Shown here in pieces: positions 18,093 to 54,919 of a DNA stretch of 64,000 nucleotides (within the stretch, counting starts at the first letter, position 1; each line of letters starts with the position of its first letter). The notes below the pieces were generated by a model. The model ran no database searches, was not told the DNA's origin, and saw only the letters and a program-made list of their open reading frames with translations. Source of the stretch: Zygnema circumcarinatum SAG 698-1b (lineage: Eukaryota > Plantae > Zygnematophyceae); the NCBI GenBank assembly GCA_037447605.1, contig CM074804.1, forward strand, positions 2,666,001 to 2,730,000, given 5' to 3'. The position numbers and the translations under genes are program-made.

Positions 18093-18154
18093 CCAATGGA
18101 GGATCGCCACGTGTCAAAAATATCTGAAGTGAATACGTGGCTTGCCACCATTGG
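18093..18154. promoter_or_regulatory. Convergent pair of CCAAT-N9-CCACG (ERSE-I consensus) elements
   Basis: CCAAT 18093-97 with CCACG 18107-11; CGTGG 18136-40 with ATTGG 18150-54. Confidence 0.6.
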
Positions 18155-24819: not shown

Positions 24820-24873
24820 CCAATTGCGCCCCACCACGTGGACACATTTGTCAACGTGGCGAGGCACGATTGG
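24820..24873. promoter_or_regulatory. Convergent pair of CCAAT-N9-CCACG elements ~80-130 bp upstream of the fumarase ATG
   Basis: CCAAT 24820-24 with CCACG 24834-38; CGTGG 24855-59 with ATTGG 24869-73. Confidence 0.65.
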
Positions 24874-25929: not shown

Positions 25930-26922
25930 GGAAAATTCTATTCTCACACCTTTTTTGTCTACACGCAGGCCTCTTTTCGCCGGGCAGATTTTAAAATAGC
26001 ACAAAAAAGGAACACACCTTTCACACCTTTTCACCCTTTTTTCTTTCACCTTTTTTTTCACACCTTTTTGGAATCGATACACACCTTTCTCCGTCGGGCA
26101 GATTTTACCCCTTCTTGTTTTTTTCAGAGAAAAAAATATCGGCCTGCCCGAATCCTCTCCGAGCGGAAGATCCGTCCGCCACGAGATCGTTCGCGGGTGG
26201 CCGTCCTTCACACGTGACTCTACACCGTCGATTCTAGCTCAGATCGCACCACGGCAGATCGGCAGATCGGCAGCACCGGGCTTGGTCACACGCCCACGTG
26301 TCCCACCCAAGCAAGCTCAAAGGTCCGTACACAAGTCGTACGGTCGCAGCTTCGAGGAAAGTCTAAAATCCTTAACATTGAGAGCTTGAACCAATCACCA
26401 TCTGCCGCGTGCGCGTATTAGACGTGGCAAACTGTGATTGGTACATGCACTCAATGACTAAATACGTTTTTTTGACTTTCCTCGAAGCTGCGCCTTATGT
26501 ACGGTCCATTGAGCCGGCTTGGGTGGGACACGTGGGACAGAGAACGGCTGCTGATCGAACGGTGATCTGCCATGGTGTGAACTGCGTGAAAATCGACGGC
26601 GGGAACTTATTGCACGTGTAAAGGACGGCCACCCGCGAACGATCTCGTGGCGGACGGATCTTCCGCTCCGAGCGGATTCGGGCAGGCAGATGTTTTTTTC
26701 TCTGAAAATATAAGATGAGTAAAATCTGCCCGACGGAAAAAGGTGCTCACGGCGCTCGGCCGCTCAGGACTAGTAGCGTGTATCGATTCCAAAAAGATGT
26801 GAAAAAAAAGGTGAAAAAAAAGGTGAAAAAAAAAGGTGTGTTCCTTTTTTGTCTATTTTAAAATCTGCCCGGCGAAATGAGGTCTGTGTGTAGACAAAAA
26901 AGGTGTGAGAGTAGAATTTTCC
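25930..26922. mobile_element. Fold-back Mutator-like non-autonomous element (B0) nested in hAT H1
   Basis: Termini GGAAAATTCTA / TAGAATTTTCC, ~290-bp inverted arms, 8-bp TSD TTTTACAA (25922-29, 26923-30). hAT paralogue H2 shows the empty site. Subterminal and core sequence is shared with B1/B2. Confidence 0.88.
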
Positions 26923-27466: not shown

Positions 27467-28121
27467 ATGCCTGGCCCCGGCGCCCATCTCCTGTACACAC
27501 TCGCCAGCGGCTTCGCCCTGCGCCACGTGTCACTCGGCCATTTCTCCGCCCTCCATTGCATGGTATACACAATCAACTCCCTTGTTGGCCCCGACATTGG
27601 CCCAATTCTGGAATATTTTCTCCAAAAATCGGCGCCAATGTTGGCAGCGCGTCTCATGGCCACCGTGCACCACCCGGTGGGCTATGTCCTCATCATGGGG
27701 GGGCCCCTCTCCATGCTCTACCGCTGGATCTCTTCCGCTCTGTTTCGGGACGCCCCGCGGCATTCACATGAGGTCTGTTGGGTTCAACTTTCGGCACGTT
27801 TCCATGTGTTTGGATTAGGGCAACTCCGTTTTTTTGTTTTTTTGTTTCTTTATTTTTTTTCTTTTCTTTTCTTTTTTTTCTAGTTTGTATTGTTTCTGGT
27901 GACTGCTGCCTATGTTTCCATTTTCTTTACTTCTCCCTCTCTCACTTTCCGTCGAACGGCCTTTTCTATGTTGTGCAGAAGGAGCTTCTTTTCAGCCAAT
28001 GCTTTGCTCTCCTTGTCGCCGGTTGCCTTTCGCATTTTTTCCTCGACATCCTCTTTGAGGTATTGATCGAAAACTGATTCAACTTTCTCTCTTTCTCTCT
28101 TTCTCTTTTTTTCTCTCTCTA

Positions 28122-28172
<51 letters not shown>

Positions 28173-29133
28173 CTCTCTCTCTCTCTTCTTATCTTCCCCT
28201 CCCTCTCGTCCCCCTCGTTCCTCTCTGCTGCCCCCCCTCCTCTCTCCTTCTCTCTGACTCTCTCACACTCTAGGCCTCCCCATTGCCTCCTTATTGCTGT
28301 CCCCTTTTTTTCAATAAAATATTTTACCGCACAACCTTCTCCTATCCCAATCCTCTGTCCACGTTCAAAGTGAGCGTTCTGACAACCGTCAAAAGGAGAG
28401 ATCACATCCCATTCTGAATTCAGCGTTTCCAAGTGTGCAGGAGAACGGCCACACGGCGTTCTATGTGTGGATATTGAGCACAGGCTATTGGCGCGGATCC
28501 CCGCCGCTGTACCCCGACTCTGTGGCGGTAACGGGGGCTCTGTGCACAATTCTTCTCGTTGGATTTTGCTTCTTAAACAGGTAAGTATGGGCCCACACAT
28601 GCTTCAGAACTCACAGAATTTTATGTTAGAATTTTTGCTTACAGTTTTCTGTCCGATTGATCCATTGCTTTGTTTTTACCTTTGGTCCCTGAAAGCCCCC
28701 TGAAGAGACCCAAATACCTGAAATATTCTTGAACCTTAAAAACGCTGAACCTTCGTTCTGAAACCACTAAAAGCCCAGTAAAGATGATGTCATTTGAGCA
28801 GTATTTTTTTTTTTTTTCTGTGTCGGTGTGTGCAGACCGCAACCGAAAAATAACTTTAATATTTCCAATCAGCTTCTGACTCTTCTCCTTATGGGCACAG
28901 TCGCGGCCCTCTATTGCCTGTGGTGTGCCTTCAACATTTACGGTCTGCCCGAAAAAAATCGGAGGCCGCCCGTGGGAGAGGAAGCGGACCTCGGAGTAAT
29001 TACATTTTTGGCCCTTTTTTTCTTTTTACCGTACGGACTTTGTATATCGACAATTGGGGCGCATCTGAGCGAGCAGGAAAAGAGTCCTTTGCTGCCGCTT
29101 TCGACAAGAGAGAGGGAGAGAGGGAGAGAGTGA
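27467..29133 (+). CDS. Conserved plant multi-pass membrane protein, YdjM-like putative metal-dependent hydrolase
   Basis: Exons 27467-27772, 27979-28059, 28441-28580, 28836-29133 join in frame: MPGPGAHLLY..GPDIG..HHPVGY..LSHFFLDILFE|ENGHTAFYVWILSTGYW..VGEEADLGV. I recognise this as an uncharacterised land-plant family. The functional call comes from His/Asp motifs only. Confidence 0.85.
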
Positions 29134-30177
29134 GGGAGAGGGAGAGAGGGAGAGAGGAAGAGAGTGAGGGAGAGAGAGGGAGAGGGGAAGAAAGTGAGGG
29201 AAGAAAGTGAGGGAGAGAGAGTGACGGAGAGAGGGAGAGAGGGAGAGAGGGAGAGAGGGAGAGAGTGAGGGAGAGAGAGACCTTCGTTAGCTCAATTTTG
29301 TAAATTTTTGTTTTGACTACGGGCAATTTTTAGTAGTCGGGTTTCTGATTTGCAATTAGGCTCGGGGCTTAGGGTTTCTGGTTCACGATTAGGGTTTTAG
29401 GATTAAGGGCCCTTGGTTTACAATTCTTACTGTACGATTAGGAATAGGGTTTAATGATTTTTGGTTTACAATTAGGATTAGGTTGTCGCGATTAGGGTTT
29501 TTACAATTATGGATAAGAGTTTAAAGGTCTTGGTTTACAATTAGGGTGAGGGTTCAGAGTTCTTGGTTCACGATTAGGGTCTGGGGCTTTCCCAGATGCA
29601 ATGTATCAACAATCTCCATAAACACACCGTATGTCTTCTGTCAATAATTTCGGCTAGGCCCTGCTTTGCAAATGGTTACGTTGGCATATAACATTGTACA
29701 GGGATTAAATCCAATACCGCAAAATATACTAAATCTAGGTTACAAATAGCTCAATTTTTTATCACTCCTGATTGGCTCGTGTATCCTCGTATGATTCCCC
29801 TCTTAACATACCCGATATAAAGAAAAAGGAGAACCTTCGAAAAAAGAATAAGAGTGGGGAGGGACTGAGAGCTGCTCTTCCAGGGGTCTAAGCTAATGAG
29901 AAAAATCCGGACCTCTAGTTTCCCTCTCTGTCGCAAGGAACTGTTCAGTCAGTTTGACAGACAGTTGAACGGGAGCAGTTTCCCATACATGGGAATGCCC
30001 TGGAACCCTAATCCCAGACAATGTAAAGATGCCTATCCTTTTTAAACCCTAAACAATGTGGCCACTTAACAGATTCGACTAATCGTATAGTTCGGTCGGT
30101 ATAGTCGGCCGAGTCCCACGAAGTTTTCCGACGGATGATTAATTTTTCCTATCAATCGTATTTTCGTTTCCCTCTCT

Positions 30178-31244
30178 TCAAAGAATCGCGCATTGGCACC
30201 CGGGCGGCGGTGGCGCCTGCGTCTCCTTCCGTGGATCCACCGGGTCCTGCATGAGGCGCTGTACCGTGTCAGAATACACAACGCATGAAAGTCTCTCTCT
30301 CTCTCGCGCTCTCACTTTCTCTCTCTCTCTCTCTCTCTCTCACTCTCTCACACACACATATACACACTCGCTCTCTCATCCCCACCAGTCCTCCCTACTT
30401 ATTTTCTCATCCATTATTCCCTCTACCTCTCTCTCTGCCTCTCTCCCTCTTCCTCTTATACTTTCCAATGGCCCTCTGGCTCTCCTATTACCAGAATACC
30501 CAATTTCTCGGCCATCCCTTCCCTTACTCTTCACTTCCTTCCCATTACCATTCCTCTTACCCTCCCTCTCACACTTCGCACCCCTCTCCTCCCTCTCCTC
30601 CCCCCCTCTCGTTCTGTTCCCCATTCCCATCTCCCTTTCTTCCCCGCCTCTCCCTTCACTCCCTCTCATCTCACGTCCACTCTCCCCCCCTCTCCCACTC
30701 CTCTCCCAGCCCCACTCCACCTATCCCCTTCCCTCACACCCTAACAACACCCCTCCTCTCCCTCTCCCTCTCCCTCTCCCTCCCCCTCCCCCTCCCCCTA
30801 CCCCCTCCCCCTCCCTCTTCTCCCTCTCTCTCCCCACCCCCCCCCTCCCTTCTCCCTCCCCCTCCCCCTTCCGCCTCCCCCCCACCTTCGCCCTCTCTCT
30901 CCCCCTCCCCCCCCTCCCTTTTCCCTCTCCCTTCCCCTCTCCCTCTCCCTTCCGCCCGTACCGGCATCTCGAACCCCCCCGCGCCCCCCTCCAGTCTCTC
31001 CCTCCGCTTGTTCTCAAACTCGATCGTGAAGCGCTTGGGCCGGCCCGCGCCCCAATCTCCGAACACGGGCAGAGCCACCGGCTGCAGCAAGCACGGGCTT
31101 CCATGAATTACTGAATAAAGAGAAATTCTGAAAAGAAAAGAAAACAACGGAGGGGCCTTAGGGCATTACCCGCTTTGACCCGCCGCCTGCAAACGGACTC
31201 TCGATCGCTTCTCTTGGTAGGACTCGACCCGTCTTCTCCGCCAT
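30178..31244 (-). CDS. Small RIN4/NOI-domain-like protein (91 aa) with C-terminal CaaX
   Basis: Exons 31244-31170, 31081-30962, 30258-30178 (GT-AG, all phase 0) give MAEKTGRVLPREAIESPFAGGGSKR|PVALPVFGDWGAGRPKRFTIEFENKRRERLEGGAGGFEMP|RLMQDPVDPRKETQAPPPPGCQCAIL*. Has PxFGxW, FTxxF and CAIL. Exon 1 is the least certain. Confidence 0.7.
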
Positions 31245-33011
31245 GGCTTGGGGGGGGGAGAGCTCTTCACCTGGGTGGGCTTCCGAGTGGGTTCTGATTT
31301 TTAAGCGAAAAAAATACACGTAAAATTAATGCTTATTAGGATTATGCTTAAAATCAAGAACCAAAAAGTTGAGGTTCAATTTTCTCTGGAAAGGTCGGTG
31401 GCAAAGTCAACGAAGAAGATTAAAATAATCGAATTAATGCGTTAATCAGGTTCGCAGATTTGTACCCGATTCAGGCCTTTCCCTTTTCCTCCTCCTCCCG
31501 TCTCCTCTGTTTCACCCTCTCTCCCACTCCCGCGTCCACTACCACTCTCTGTCCACCTCTCCTCCCTCCTTCTGTCTTCCTCTCTCCCTCTCCCCTCCTC
31601 TCTCTCTCTATCTACGTTCTCTCCCTCCCACCACCCTCGTTCCCTCCAACGGCCCCTCCTCCCTCTCCCTTTCCCTCTCCCTCTCCCTCTCCCTCGCCGT
31701 CTCCTTCGCCCTCTCCTCTCTCCCCTTAAATTGTTTGTCGGCATTGACCCCGCCACCTTACAAAACGACAAACTTGGCCGCCCTCACGGCCGGTCTGTTC
31801 GTACGGTCCACGGCGCGTCGCGGTGCCGGATCGCGGTCTCGCCCGCAGAGCGCGCCGCGCCGTACGGAACGGAAGCGACATGCTCGCTGCGCGAAAGCGG
31901 ACACGTGGGCGCTGGAAAGACTATCGCGTGTGCGGGCGAATCTCACCAACGTCGTGACTTTCTGGATTCCGCGTCGATAGCCGCCCGCCGCTGCCTGGAG
32001 CCGTACGAACTTATTGTCAGAACGACCTGGAGTGACAGAAACGACAAAGGTAAATTATGAAAACCCGACAGACTACTGTACGAAACTCACTCAGCGCCAA
32101 GTGAATGTTGTCGTTTCTGGTCCACCGACATCCTTTGACAAAGGACAGCGGCGGAGTGCGTCAGCACCTGCCCACTTGTCAGATCTGCACGAACGTTCAA
32201 CGGTCAAGATAGCTCGATGGTACACTGACCGTACGATTAATATAGATCCAACGGTCAAGAATGTACAGCCCAACCCGAATCCTGCCGTCCAGACCTGGGC
32301 TTGACCTGACTTGCCCTCGAATTCGGGGTGCCGACAAATCCGTCGTCGCCATGTCAACCTGCGACGTGTCGCGCCCCCGTTGGCCACTTCCTGCCGCCCG
32401 CCGCCCAAGCTTGCCGACCGCGGCGGCCCGCACGACCTGCCCGCCCGCCCGCTCGACGGGAAACGGGACCGTTCCATGCGCCGCAGTCAGCGACCTGTCA
32501 TTTTTGACGGTTTCATGCGGGCTGCCCGCCGTGGAGGAGCACGGCGAACCTCTCAAGGCTGATGTGATCCCGGATCAGGGCAGCGAATCACAGCGAGCAA
32601 ACTGATTCACCACTGACGTGGCATATTCCAAGGGTGTCCGTACAGCAACGATGGAGAAACGTCAAATGGCGCCTGTCCGTACCTCCCTCCCTCCCGCCCT
32701 CCCTCCGCCTGCCGCTGGTGGCCGAGGTACAGGCACCGCCCGGCGGGGCTGTTGTACGAAATCATACGGCACCGACAGCCGGTGACTTCTGTCCATGACC
32801 GTCGATACGCCGCCGGGTCGCGACAGTTTTCTCGTAACAAACGACAAAATTTGCCGCCCTATCGCCCAAGCGCCAGCACGACGACCTCCACTTCCTACTG
32901 CTCAGAAACGTCGTGAAGTGGTCGGTGGATCCTGATTGGCCGCGCCGGCTTGACGGGCGGGTAGGGCCGGGGCCGGTCAGACTGCGGTACACACCCTACT
33001 ACAGTTGAGTA

Positions 33012-35189: not shown

Positions 35190-38100
35190 ATGGCGGAGAG
35201 CGCGCCCCCTCGGGTTAAACCCTGAACCCGAAACCCTCTCCCACTCTAATCCCCTCCCCGGCCCATCCGCTCCGCCCCCTGCTCTGGCGCCGAAAGGGAA
35301 AAGGGGGAAATGTGGGTCAGAGAGGGTTCAGGTTTCTGGATTTTAGGGTTGGTTGGCAGCTTTGGGGCGGGACAAGTGTCGCATGGGCGTGAAAGGAAGG
35401 GTCTAGAAAACGACCTGAAACCCCTGAACCCTAAATTCGTATTTTTCTTCAGGAGAATAAGCTTAAACCCTACCAACGCCGTGATTCTGAGGTTTTGCTG
35501 GGAGGGCTCCTGCAGTAACTCTTTATGCTTTTTTAACGAGCCCTAAAACCTACCAACCTAAATTAACTTAAACCCATAAAAGACTTCAATCTCCGGATAA
35601 ACACTTAACCTCAAATCCTCGTCCAATTCTGTACGATGATCGCAAAGAAAATTCCTCGCAAACATCGTTTTTTTCAATCTCTCGTTTATTTTATTTTGTT
35701 TTAGTCCCCTTGCTTTGATATGGAGAATTATTTTTTCAGTTTTGAACGCTTAGGTTCGTTCAACGTTGAACTGACGTATGCAAAGAATGAGAAGGAACGA
35801 ACTAAATTTGTTCCACTTCCTTACCTCTCGATCTCTTGAATAGTTGATCTCCCCAATGATGTTGACCTCCCTTGTAATGTCGATCTTCACCAGAACGTGG
35901 ACCTCTACCCAATGTTGACCCCCCCCGTAATGTTGATCTCCCCTTAAACGTTGATCCGGCAGGTGGATCGGAGCGAGCCGCCCACCATAGAGGTGCCAAA
36001 GCGGTGGATGGACGGCTTCCGGTCGCCCTCCTCCTGCACGCCGAGCCGCAGCCTCACCTCCTCCGTGCTGGGGAGGGGAGCCACCGGTACACGCCGCCCT
36101 GCCAGGGAGAGGGAGAGGGAGGGGGAGGGGGGAGAGGGAGAGGAGAGAGGGAGAGGGAGAGGGANNNNNNNNNNGGAGAGAGGGAGAGAGGGAGAGAGGG
36201 AGAGAGGGAGAGAGGAGAGAGGAGAGAGGAGAGAGGAGAGAGGCGAGAGGCGAGAGGCGAGAGGAGAGAGGGAGAGATGGAGAGATGGAGAGATGGAGAG
36301 AGGGAAAGAGGGAGAGAGGGAGAGAGGGAGAGAGGGAGGGGGAGGGGGAGGGGGGGAGGGAGGGGAAGAGGGAGAGGGAGAGGGAGGGGGAGAGTGGGGA
36401 GGCGAGCAGAATTCGTTTCAGTGAAACTCAAGCGCACATTACTATTTTTTCTCCCACCCTCTCACCTATCAATCCCTCCCTCTCGCCCTTTCCTCTTCCC
36501 CACTCTTTCTCCCCCCTCTGTCCTCTCATTCGTTTCCCACCCCTTTTTTCTCCCACTTTCCCCTCCCTCCCTCCCCTCCCGCCCCCCCCCTCCCCATCCC
36601 ACCCTCCCTCCCCCTCCCTTCCTTCCCTCGCGCCCCTCCCCTCTCCCCTCGCCCCTCTCCCTCCCTCTCATCTCCAGGCAATGTTCACTCCCTTTTCAAA
36701 ATGGGCCCCAAACTCGGCGAGGGCCAGTTCGGCACAGCGTACAACTGCACGGAGATTGCAACTGGACAGAAGTTCGCATGTAAAAGCATCGCGCGGAGCT
36801 CCCTCATCAGTGAAGAGGACGTCGAGGACGTGCGCAGGGAGGTGAACGTCATGTACCGGCTCGCCGGGCAGCCCAACATTGTGAAGATTGTGGGCACGTA
36901 CGAGGACAAGTCGCACGTGCACATTGTGATGGAGCTGTGTGAGGGGGGCGAGCTTTTCGACGACATTAACGCAAGGGTGTTGAGGCAACGGGTGCCGTAC
37001 AGGTTGGGAAACGTGGCTCCTATTTTTCTACGGTTAAGGGTTTTAGGGTGGCTATGGTTTAGGGGGGTTTTGGGGGAGTTTGGCTTCTCGGTTTGAAGGT
37101 ATTTTAAGGGGAGGGGGGATGCGGTGAGTGGTAGGTTGGGCTTTGATGGCTTGTAGGGTTTCAGGAAATTTTGGGATTTCTTGGGGTTATTGGGGTTTGG
37201 CTACTTCCTACTTTTCGCTTTTTTAATGATTTCTTTTTTGAATGGTTTTCGAGCAAAGTCTGAGTGTTGAGAGTATTTCTATGTGCACAGTGAGCGTGAC
37301 GCATCACGGTTGGCAAAAGGTTTAATCCGTTCCGTGGAACGGTGCCATGCGCTCGGCGTCATCCACCGCGATCTCAAACCGGAGAACTTTTTGCTCTCGT
37401 CCAAAAGCGAAGACGCGGTCTTGAAGGCGGCGGACTTTGGCTTGGCGACGTTTTTTAAAGAAGGTGACTCTCTCTCTCTCACCCCCCTCCCCCCTTACCT
37501 CTCTCTCTCCCTCCCCCCCCCCCCCATTCAACCCCTCAACACCTCAAACCCAACATCCTCCAAACCCGCAACCCCTCTGAACCCTCCCCCCCCCCAAAAC
37601 CATTCCCCGCAGGGCAGGCCTTCCGGCGCGTGTGCGGCAGCGCCATGTACATGGCCCCGGAGGTGGTGCGCCTATTCCTGCGGCAGCGCGGCGCGCCGTA
37701 CGGCCCCCCTGTGGACGTATGGAGCGCGGGCGTGGTCCTGCACATCCTCCTCGCCGCGCACCACCCCTTCGCGCCGCCGCCCGCCGACAGTGGGGCCCCC
37801 ACCCCGCCCGCCCGCCCGCGTGTGCCCCTAGCGGCGGGTTTCCTAGCGTTGTGCGGCTAGCTCTGGGCCCCTTACTTTGTGCGCCTAGTTCTGTGCGGGT
37901 AGCACTGTGGCCCTAGCTTTGTGCTGCTAGTTTTGTGCTGGGAGGATTGTGCTCCTAGCTTTGTGCTCCTAGTTTTGTGCTGGGAGCACTGTGCCGCTAG
38001 CTTTGCGTCCGTAGCTTCGTGCGGCTAGCTTTGTGCTCATACCCCCTACGTTCAACCTGACCGTTCATCTTGAGATTGGCCCTGAGTCGCCAAATTGAAC

Positions 38101-39264
38101 TCTGACTTCGACCCTAATTCTAACCCTCACTTTGGTGTGACTTGTTTGTTGCGTGTGAAGGAACGGACATGGGGTTTATGAGGGCTATTTTGAAAGGGAG
38201 ATTATCGTTTGCCGGATCGGAATGGAAAAATGTGAGTGATGGTGCAAAGGAGCTTATTTGGGGCATGCTCCAACCGGACCCAAAAGATCGATTAACAGCC
38301 GAACAAGTTTACAGTGAGTTCAACAAAACCTTGAAAACTTTAATCCTAAACTAAATAAATGCCCAGAGAACCCAGCATTGTACATTCATATATGGCTTGT
38401 TTCTTATTTTTTTGCTTTGTCTCTTTTTGATATTCTTTCTTAATGATTGAAGTGAAGGTGATGCATGTTGTGGGTTCAGACCATCCATGGATACAAAACG
38501 CGCCGGATGAACCCTTGGAGGAAAGCGTGATCGAGCGGTTCAAATCATTTTTTGAGCTCGTTCGAATGAAGAAGTTTAAGAAGATGCTCGTCCGGGTGAG
38601 TACTTCATTTTCTCTCGTAAGGCACAAACCAAAGGAGAGGAAAATAAACGAATCCTTCAAAACAGAAGTGAGTAAGCGGGTAATGTGTCGAACGCAACCT
38701 TATCAGAGTTTACCTCATTTTCAGTTCTGAATTATATCCCCAAACAGAATACGATGTCACAATTTTCAACCTAAGCCACTCTATGGTATAAATTTTAGGG
38801 TTTCAAGACTTCCCTGCCTCCTGCTCTGGGCTTTATAAGATTCTCAGCGATTACAGCTTCAAAGGTTCCGAGCTCCGAGCTCTTTACCCGCTTTGCCAAA
38901 CTTTCCTGTAAAGCCTATGTTATGTATGAACTTCATCTATCTACTTCACTATCTTCACTAGCTGGCTCGCGCGGCGCCCACTGCGTTCGCTTAGAAAGTT
39001 GGATTAGATTAAATTATTCGATAGATTTACCACCATCATCTCCGTAACGGCACCATCCCCTGCACTAGGGGCACCCCCCCCCCCCTAAGCTACGCGCACT
39101 ACCCGCGGCGCAGGCAGGCCCTGGGCGGCACCCTCGCGGCGGAGGACATCGCGGCGCTCGCGGCGCGCCTCGACCGCGGGGCGCCGCTGGGGGACCTGCT
39201 GGAGGCGCTCGAGGAGGGAAACCACCAGGACGCGCTCAGGGCCATCAGGGACGCGCAGGACATG
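35190..39264 (+). CDS. CDPK-derived Ser/Thr kinase with degenerate calmodulin-like domain; 3' end probably lost in the gap at 39600
   Basis: Exons 35190-35213 (tentative), 35963-36086, 36678-36984 (donor uncertain), 37291-37463, 37613-37789, 38161-38313, 38480-38595, 39118-39264. Motifs [51 protein letters not shown] and a junction domain; intron positions match plant CDPKs. Confidence 0.85.
36165..36174. other. Assembly gap (10 N)
   Basis: Run of N in a GA-rich intron. Confidence 1.
37828..38038. repeat. Degenerate ~14-bp minisatellite (CTAGCTTTGTGCNN) in a kinase intron
   Basis: About 14 imperfect units read directly. Confidence 0.8.
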
Positions 39265-39475
39265 GTGCGCTCTCGCTCACGCACACATACACACTCCTCT
39301 GTCTCTTTCTCCCTCCCTTTTTTGTCTCGGCTTCCTTCCTCTACTTCCTCCTAAAACCGGAAAGCAATCCCCCACTTCGACTTCTCTCGTTCTCTCTTCC
39401 AAATCCCCAAATCTGAATAAAATCCTCAAGTAATTCCGCCCCCCCTTTCTCTCCCCCTCCCCCGGCAACCCCCTA

Positions 39476-52688: not shown

Positions 52689-53606
52689 GGGTAGTGATAT
52701 TTCCACCCCTTTTTTGGATCCAAACACCCCTTCCCGGCCGGGCAGAGTTCAAAAAGGATTAAAAACGGAAAATGCTTTCTTCACACCTTTTTGGAATCGA
52801 TACCACCCTCCATCGGCAGATTTTATTTCTGCGAAACAAGGAAAATGATAACCCGTCACCCCATTTGAATATCCCGCCTACCTGAATTTTTTTTCACGCG
52901 TGCGGTCAATCGCAGCCGTCGATTCCCTCGCAGATCGCAACACGGCAGATCACTATTTGATCTGCAGCCGGGCTCGGTCACAGCGCATGGCACGTGCCGA
53001 CGTATCCCGCCAAAAGTCCTCTCAAACGTTTGTCCGTACAAATGTCGTACGGTCGAACTTGAGGAACCCAAAAAATCGTACATTGAGATCTTAAACCAAT
53101 CAAAATTTTCCACGTCGAAAATTAAACACGTGGCAGATGTTGATTGGCTGAGAGCTAACAATGACGAGATCTCGGGCCGAGGGACGCGCGCACTCGCACG
53201 TGCGATCCGGCTTTGGCGGGACTCGTGGGCGCTTTCCATTCGCTAAGATCGAGCCCGGCTGCAGATCGAACGGTGATCTGCAGTGGTGTGATCTGCGAGG
53301 GAATCGACAGCTGCGATTGACACACATTACGTGGTGGACGAATCTGCCGCTCCGAGCGGATTCGGGCAGGCAGATATTTCTTTCCCGCAAAAAAAAAATT
53401 CAGGCAGGCGGGATACAGTATTCAAAATGCGATGACGGGGTATCATTTTCCTTGGTTAGCAAAAATAAAATCAGCCGACGGAAGAAGGTGGGTATCGATT
53501 CCAAAAAGGTGTGAAAAAAGCATTTTCTGTTTTTAATCCCTTTTGAACTCTGCCCGGCCGGGAAGGGGTGTTTGGATCCAAAAAAGGGGTGGAAATATCA
53601 CTACCC
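52689..53606. mobile_element. Fold-back Mutator-like non-autonomous element B1
   Basis: TIR starts GGGTAGTGATATTTCCACCCC, ~205 bp close match with symmetry to ~290 bp; perfect 8-bp TSD TTACTCAA. Confidence 0.93.
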
Positions 53607-53983: not shown

Positions 53984-54919
53984 GGGTAGTGATATTTCCA
54001 CCCCTTTTTTGGATCCAAACACCCCTTCCCGGCCGGGCAGATTTCAAAAGGGATTAAAAAAGGAAAATGCTTTTTTCACACCTTTTTGGAATCGATACCC
54101 ACCTTCCGTCGGCTGATTTTATTTTTGCTAACCAAGGAAAATGATACCCCGTCACCGCATTTTGAATACTGTATCCCGCCTACCTGAATTTTTTTTTTGA
54201 GGGAAAGAAATATCTGCCTGCCCGAATCCGCTCGGAGCGGAAGATCCGTCCGCCACGAGATCGTTCGCGGGTGTCCGTCCTTAACACGTGTGTGTCAATC
54301 GCAGCTGTCGATTCCCTCGCAGATCGCACCACTGCAGATCACCGTTCGATCTGCAGGCGGGCTTGATCTCAGCGAATGGAAAGCGCCCACGAGTCCCGTC
54401 AAAGCCGGATCGCACGAACGAGTGCGCTCGTACCTCGGCCCGAGATCTTGTTCTATTGTCAGCTCCCAGCCAATCAACATTTGCCACGTGTTAAATTTTT
54501 GACGTGGAAAATTTTGATTGGTCCAAACTCTCAATGTACAAATTTTTTGGTACGACCGTACGATATTTGTACGGACAATTTTTTTAGACGACTTTGGCGG
54601 GATACGTGGGCCCGTGCCAGTCGCTGTGAACGAGCCCGGCTGCAGATCAAATAGTGATCTGCCTCGTTGCGATCTGCGAGGGAATCGACGGCTGCGATTG
54701 ACCGCACGCGTGAAAAAAAATTCAGGTAAGCAGGATATTCAAATGGAGTGAAGGGTTATAATTTTCCTTATTTCGCAAAAATACAATCTGCCAATGGAGG
54801 GTGGGTATCGATTCCAAAAAGGTGTGAAAAAAGCATTTTCCGTTTTTAATCCTTTTTGAAATCTGCCCGACCGGGAAGGGGTGTTTGGATCCAAAAAAGG
54901 GGTGGAAATATCACTACCC
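53984..54919. mobile_element. Fold-back Mutator-like non-autonomous element B2 (inverted relative to B1)
   Basis: Same TIR; perfect 8-bp TSD AAAAACTA (53976-83, 54920-27). Confidence 0.93.

Follow-up and report, generated by a model that had tools for sequence, protein, structure and literature searches.

A candidate three-exon gene for a small NOI-like protein with a CaaL box in the streptophyte alga Zygnema circumcarinatum

The locus described here lies in a stretch of 64,000 nucleotides from the genome of Zygnema circumcarinatum SAG 698-1b (contig CM074804.1 of assembly GCA_037447605.1, positions 2,666,001 to 2,730,000, forward strand), which is referred to throughout as the window and from whose first letter all coordinates are counted. 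Read on the minus strand, the locus presents three GT-AG-bounded exons (31244-31170, 31081-30962 and 30258-30178) with every junction in phase 0, which together would encode 25 + 40 + 26 = 91 residues. An earlier note had proposed a hidden RIN4/NOI-like gene with a prenylation box at this position, and its coordinates, frames and motifs were all recovered when the minus strand was read again as three phase-0 exons encoding 91 aa. The features, listed 5' to 3' on the minus strand with splice junctions marked by a slash, are as follows.

31170..31244 (minus strand), proposed exon 1: 25 aa, ATG context caagccATGG, donor CGG/GTAATG; translation MAEKTGRVLPREAIESPFAGGGSKR
31082..31169 (minus strand), proposed intron 1: 88 nt, AT- and pyrimidine-rich, ending tgctgcag
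30962..31081 (minus strand), exon 2: 40 aa, NOI-like module, acceptor ...tgctgcag/CC, donor CCG/GTACGG; translation PVALPVFGDWGAGRPKRFTIEFENKRRERLEGGAGGFEMP
31004..31072 (minus strand), NOI-like core within exon 2: LPVFGDW, 7 aa, FTIEFENKR
30259..30961 (minus strand), proposed intron 2: 703 nt, 85% purine, GA-rich low complexity and tandem repeats, ending ...ggtacag
30178..30258 (minus strand), proposed exon 3: 26 aa and the stop codon TGA; translation RLMQDPVDPRKETQAPPPPGCQCAIL
30181..30198 (minus strand), C-terminal CQCAIL: CaaL box CAIL with a second Cys two residues upstream

The surroundings of the locus contain both recognizable genes and extensive simple sequence. A CDPK gene occupies 36701-39300 on the plus strand and its exon 36707-36976 matches Pkinase (E 1.7e-21). 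One confirmed-looking intron of this gene (37466-37612, plus strand) is of low complexity in the manner of the proposed intron 2, with a pure CT-rich tract directly after the donor, and low-complexity introns of this kind are normal for this genome. An ORF of 138 aa (27467-27883, plus strand) shows strong 3-base periodicity over 27638-27762 and has no Pfam match; lying directly downstream of the NOI-like locus, it could represent one exon of a membrane protein not yet characterised. An assembly gap lies at about 36100-36200 inside a GA-rich tract, the window contains 210 N, and the ORF translations there include runs of X. Around the locus itself, GA-rich tracts on opposite strands form inverted repeats (29107-29285, plus strand, against 30290-30950 and 31505-31726) that are imperfect, up to 73 nt long, 70-83% complementary and of low complexity. 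Capture of the locus by a transposon was considered and rejected, as these flanking repeats are merely GA/CT low complexity and terminal repeats are absent. The Ser/Leu/Pro-rich ORFs of the plus strand (30251-31114 and 30285-31106) were also rejected as genes, having low-complexity translations and no Pfam match, and so were the minus-strand ORFs that cross the GA tract, which have no Pfam match and represent translated low-complexity DNA. A search against Rfam returned no match within the window.

The base composition of exon 2 points to coding sequence. Its GC content at the first, second and third codon positions is 0.68, 0.53 and 0.88, respectively, and G or C occupies 35 of its 40 third positions, as against a GC fraction of 0.60 at the first and second positions combined (binomial 1.4e-4). 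Third-position GC of this pattern, in the given phase, is found in 0.4% of all 120-nt windows and in 2% of the GC-rich ones. The two clearest exons of the CDPK neighbour have third-position GC contents of 0.80 and 0.64, with 0.37-0.41 at the second position. Strong 3-base periodicity occurs in 16 clusters across the 64 kb, one of which (30951-31099) matches the edges of exon 2, whilst others fall on the CDPK exons. Since an amino-acid motif leaves third positions free, this codon-position evidence is independent of the motif discussed below. Exon 2 is probably real coding sequence, now or until very recently, with a codon bias like that of the neighbouring kinase gene. In the two proposed flanking exons, G or C occupies 15 of 25 third positions (exon 1) and 20 of 26 (exon 3), and neither has a significant codon-position signal.

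Members of the NOI family are defined by a PxFGxW motif, a Y/FTxxF motif and C-terminal cysteines (Afzal 2013, PMC3661340). Exon 2 contains the first of these as PVFGDW (31069-31052, minus strand) and the second as FTIEF, which begins 7 residues after the Trp. The sequence LPVFGDW-(7 aa)-FTIEFENKR, which the earlier note had compared with the N-terminal NOI domain of RIN4, is thus present in the middle exon, with the motif pair and spacing quoted there. Over the six frames of the window, PxFGxW is seen once, with 0.33 expected, and the second motif, in the form [FY]TxxF, is frequent (20 occurrences, with 23 expected). A single instance of the pair PxFGxW-(3-12)-[FY]TxxF is present, and 300 simulated windows contained none; when the parts of the pair are multiplied, about 4-6e-4 are expected per window. 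A genome of at least 1200 such windows would hold about 0.5-0.8 chance occurrences, an estimate for which the genome was counted as at least 1177 windows of this size. The motif pair is therefore rare per window but not per genome, and by itself is no proof of anything. These figures favour the view that GC-rich, non-coding DNA lying between low-complexity tracts produced the pair by chance, and that exons were then assembled around it from abundant ATG, GT, AG and stop signals. Against this, similarity to NOI repeats extends beyond the two motifs, to the Leu before the Pro, the 7-aa spacing and the FEN-x-R that follows.

The profile PF05627 (AvrRpt-cleavage), whose gathering cut-off is 20.3 bits, aligns with exon 2 alone at 10.8 bits (E 0.33), and the alignment spans residues 3-19 and profile positions 6-25, covering the first motif only. 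No other Pfam family matches exon 2, and exons 1 and 3, of 25 and 26 aa, have no Pfam match. The earlier note had staked its claim on a match to this profile and escaped refutation narrowly: the family it named is the sole one found, but the score falls short of the cut-off. A phmmer search with exon 2 against 1.84 billion representative proteins returned nine hits, seven of which pass PF05627, namely proteins from Tagetes, Diphasiastrum, Beta and Heliosperma, a cluster including Carnegiea and two known only from transcript assemblies. The whole-protein E-values to these seven range from 2e-9 to 8.5e-4 and derive from summed repeats; on local re-comparison every single matched stretch scores merely 5-17 bits, and three to five repeats contribute to each E-value. 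The lowest E-value, 2e-9 for the protein P0001, is a sum over five repeats. In the same way, the unrelated tandem-repeat proteins P0005 and P0008 reach 7.5e-5 and 7.5e-4 by summing 5-9 matches of 3-8 bits. Because weak repeat matches are summed, and unrelated proteins pass likewise, whole-protein E-values of a short query against repeat proteins are inflated and are not to be taken at face value. What the search indicates is that the peptide resembles an NOI module, a likeness that does not amount to homology shown independently of the motif by which it was first picked.

An HMM made from all 36 retrieved NOI repeats finds a single match when the window is read in six frames: exon 2, with 27.7 bits. 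Order-3 Markov sequence, simulated to 16 Mb, gives at most 14.0. As these 36 had been chosen for likeness to exon 2, the HMM was rebuilt from the 18 repeats least like it; exon 2 in its ORF context then scores 19.7 bits (E 5e-5 for the window), as compared with a simulated best of 16.0 in 16 Mb; the margin supports an NOI-like module, but the small extent of the simulation leaves room for chance. The consensus of this conservative HMM, aligned to the core, reads PkFGaWeggdsvsYTgyFenaReer, and the spacing of the two motifs in exon 2 is that of many repeats in P0003, P0004 and P0007, all of them Pfam-positive NOI proteins. A PDB sequence search with exon 2 found nothing even at E 10, and in the ESM Atlas exon 2 retrieved only unrelated bacterial clusters, below 0.9; P0001 retrieved RIN4 clusters at 0.81-0.83. 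On sequence similarity as a whole, roughly 0.1-0.7 such matches per genome would be expected by chance. So short a match cannot prove kinship, and family membership is not proven by it. The NOI identity claimed earlier stands in part: the exon carries the motifs of the published definition and its best matches are Pfam-positive NOI proteins, but its PF05627 score is below the cut-off.

The open frame of exon 2 contains no in-frame ATG of its own, so the NOI-like peptide could be made only through splicing to an upstream exon. Within 1.2 kb there are 38 in-phase ATG/GT/AG combinations that could serve as first exon, a number that lends itself to assembly by chance; the exon 1 proposed here is the nearest of the 38, has the best start context and is the most canonical. 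Other ATG exons are possible at 31744 and 31881. The intervening intron has a purine fraction of 0.35 and a GC content of 0.43, compared with 0.61-0.69 for the adjoining exons. At the other end, an alternative in-phase acceptor for exon 3, catgcag/GAC, lies 12 nt downstream (first exon base 30246) and would shorten the product by four residues. If intron 2 were left unspliced, the frame would continue for another 75 codons beyond the proposed donor before it met a stop at 30734-30736, and the resulting tail would end in RRGVVRV, without a Cys.

The C-terminus supplied by exon 3 distinguishes the spliced model. With exon 3 joined as proposed, and only then, the product ends in GCQCAIL, which includes two cysteines; the box itself, C-A-I-L-stop (30192-30178, minus strand), has a Cys fourth from the end, a mostly aliphatic pair and a final Leu. 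The CaaL ending predicted by the earlier note is in this way upheld as the reading of exon 3, within the spliced model. The last 26 residues include no aromatic residue. Within 1.5 kb downstream, 49 ORF tails can be reached, and a Cys stands near the end in 17 of them, so that C-terminal cysteines alone are easy to find, a point in favour of chance. GCQCAIL, by comparison, is the only CaaX box among the 49. Window-wide, 0.32% of ORF tails end in CaaL and 0.07% in C-x(0-2)-CaaX, and a CaaL with a second Cys is expected merely about 0.02-0.1 times among the reachable tails. Set beside the third-position GC excess of exon 2, which is independent of the motif, rare (1.4e-4; 0.4% of windows) and of an extent that fits the exon edges, this rarity makes it improbable that the locus is an accident of composition, even though the Pfam score is below threshold and no product appears in the protein collections or the JGI metagenomes.

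A different possibility is that the NOI-like exon 2 is truly coding but belongs to another gene model, either with a different first exon, such as those starting at 31744 or 31881, or with read-through of the GA tract to 30734-30736. The read-through product would carry a low-complexity Gly/Glu/Arg tail and no lipid anchor. The 75 open codons beyond the proposed donor are compatible with this, as are the lack of coding signal in exons 1 and 3 and the Glu/Gly low-complexity runs found inside the coding sequence of P0001. However, the periodic coding signal ends at about 30951, at the proposed donor, and intron 1, of 88 nt, shows a clean pyrimidine tract with a CAG acceptor. In addition, NOI proteins typically end in cysteines (PMC3661340), and the spliced tail supplies exactly these. 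Another gene model is on balance unlikely, and the favoured reading, held with moderate confidence, is a small three-exon gene of a streptophyte alga, as modelled above, for a lipid-anchored protein with a single NOI module.

Whether this gene is active bears on a further alternative. A protein containing exon 2, at any length, was sought in a collection of 15 billion proteins that includes transcript assemblies, and none was found; a word search for the unspliced ORF limited to exon 2 (candidates of 75-240 aa) likewise found nothing. In the JGI metagenomes, exon 2 together with 9 intron-encoded residues gave 598 pattern matches, of which none was confirmed. The absence of the product from protein collections counts mildly against expression. 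An ERSE-like box, CCAAT-N9-CCACG, is about nine times as frequent in the window as expected (31 against 3.4), with sites for example at 18093-18154, 24820-24873, 26391-26441, 53096-53147 and 54470-54521, and these boxes often form convergent pairs about 30 nt apart. The box is absent between 26.4 and 33.8 kb, and none lies within 2.5 kb upstream of the locus. The missing product and the missing promoter box would both suit a decaying or silent paralogue, derived by recent duplication of one module from a multi-NOI gene and now without expression. Against such decay, all three reading frames remain intact, as do the splice signals and the CaaL box, and the codon bias of exon 2 has been kept; we regard a silent paralogue as improbable.

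Comparison with known NOI proteins shows where the three-exon gene product would fit. Land-plant proteins with one NOI module (Arabidopsis NOI1-NOI14 type, PF05627) are about 70-100 aa long and carry the module, PxFGxW with [Y/F]TxxF, near the N-terminus (PMC3661340, PMC9514647), as would the predicted product. The spliced product is also predicted to be disordered-looking and to have its cysteines within the last 12 residues, in common with these proteins. It differs from them in the PF05627 score of exon 2, 10.8 bits rather than the required 20.3, in having a CaaL box in place of aromatic-flanked cysteines and in belonging to an alga. Aromatic residues flank the C-terminal cysteines in all NOI proteins except the RIN4 of moss (PMC3661340). 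With the N-terminal NOI of RIN4, which contains the first AvrRpt2 cleavage site, the predicted product shares the motif pair and the 7-residue spacing, whereas RIN4 as a whole is a protein of about 211 aa with two NOI domains, anchored through a cluster of Cys that aromatic residues follow (PMC3661340).

The best match to exon 2 among the 1.84 billion proteins is P0001, which scores 58 bits with PF05627. It is 533 aa long, is known only from transcript assemblies (Logan) and has four clear NOI repeats and a degenerate fifth. Word searches with the whole protein and with its residues 1-130 returned only P0001 itself and no relatives. It may come from the same alga as the locus. The two are alike in their repeats, xPxFGxW-7/8-[YF]TxxFE, and in a CaaL end with an adjacent Cys, and the Glu/Gly runs of P0001 resemble the translated GA-rich DNA of the window; unlike the predicted product, P0001 is a multi-module protein. 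NOI proteins with a CaaL ending therefore exist, P0001 terminating in ACCVIL and P0009 of Heliosperma in SCCTIL. Since P0001 was found with exon 2 alone, its CaaL ending counts as support for the tail proposed here. The same endings remove the significance that the earlier note had attached to the box as the mark of an early form of the family: the ending is not special, as CCTIL occurs in an angiosperm (Heliosperma P0009) and CCVIL in P0001.

Boxes of the CAIL type are geranylgeranylated by GGTase-I, after which the last three residues are removed and a neighbouring Cys can be S-acylated. Among plant proteins with a CaaL ending and dual lipidation, the type-I ROP GTPases and the G-gamma subunit AGG2 are directed to the plasma membrane by geranylgeranylation together with S-acylation. 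The predicted product resembles them in its C-a-a-L end with a nearby upstream Cys, but lacks a GTPase or G-gamma domain, and its box is not preceded by a polybasic stretch.

From these comparisons a working scheme can be proposed for the small three-exon gene. Splicing would join exon 2 to the ATG exon close by and to the downstream exon ending in CQCAIL, giving a product of approximately 91 aa that is rich in Gly, Pro, Arg and Glu and presumably disordered. If general CaaX biology applies, GGTase-I would attach a geranylgeranyl group to the CAIL box, the three terminal residues would be trimmed off and the upstream Cys would be S-acylated. The lipidated C-terminus could then tether the protein to a membrane, as the C-terminal cysteines do for RIN4 and other NOI proteins; such cysteines are known to give membrane attachment, and NOI modules have been linked to EXO70 subunits of the exocyst (PMC3661340). 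By analogy with these land-plant proteins, the exposed NOI module may be a short peptide on which partners such as EXO70 dock. In short, judging from its sequence, the locus is probably an unannotated gene for a floppy, lipid-anchored protein that carries the short NOI motif known from RIN4, a hub of plant immunity. The published consensus for AvrRpt2 cleavage is VPxFGxW, and LPVFGDW likewise has a hydrophobic residue before the Pro. On paper, LPVFGDW fits this consensus, a fit that says nothing of biology in an alga.

The NOI family has been traced 'as far back as moss' (PMC3661340), and a survey of 2022 found no member in Chlorophyta, Rhodophyta or Marchantia, its sampling including no streptophyte alga (PMC9514647). 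Our literature search found no paper linking NOI to streptophyte algae. On the sequence comparisons given above, the locus probably adds a short, single-NOI member. A more far-reaching proposal, which is possible but rather doubtful, is that streptophyte algae already had a small NOI family, of which this locus represents a minimal form with one NOI peptide on a prenyl-plus-acyl anchor. If this were true, the NOI module would have begun as a membrane-tethered adaptor for housekeeping, for example in exocyst-mediated secretion, and only in land plants would it have been co-opted as an immune guardee and its anchor exchanged for the aromatic-flanked acylation motif. A genuine algal NOI gene would date this immune/exocyst hub module to before the conquest of land. 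If real, the protein encoded here would offer a minimal, single-module system for asking which role NOI peptides had before they became targets of effectors and NLRs.
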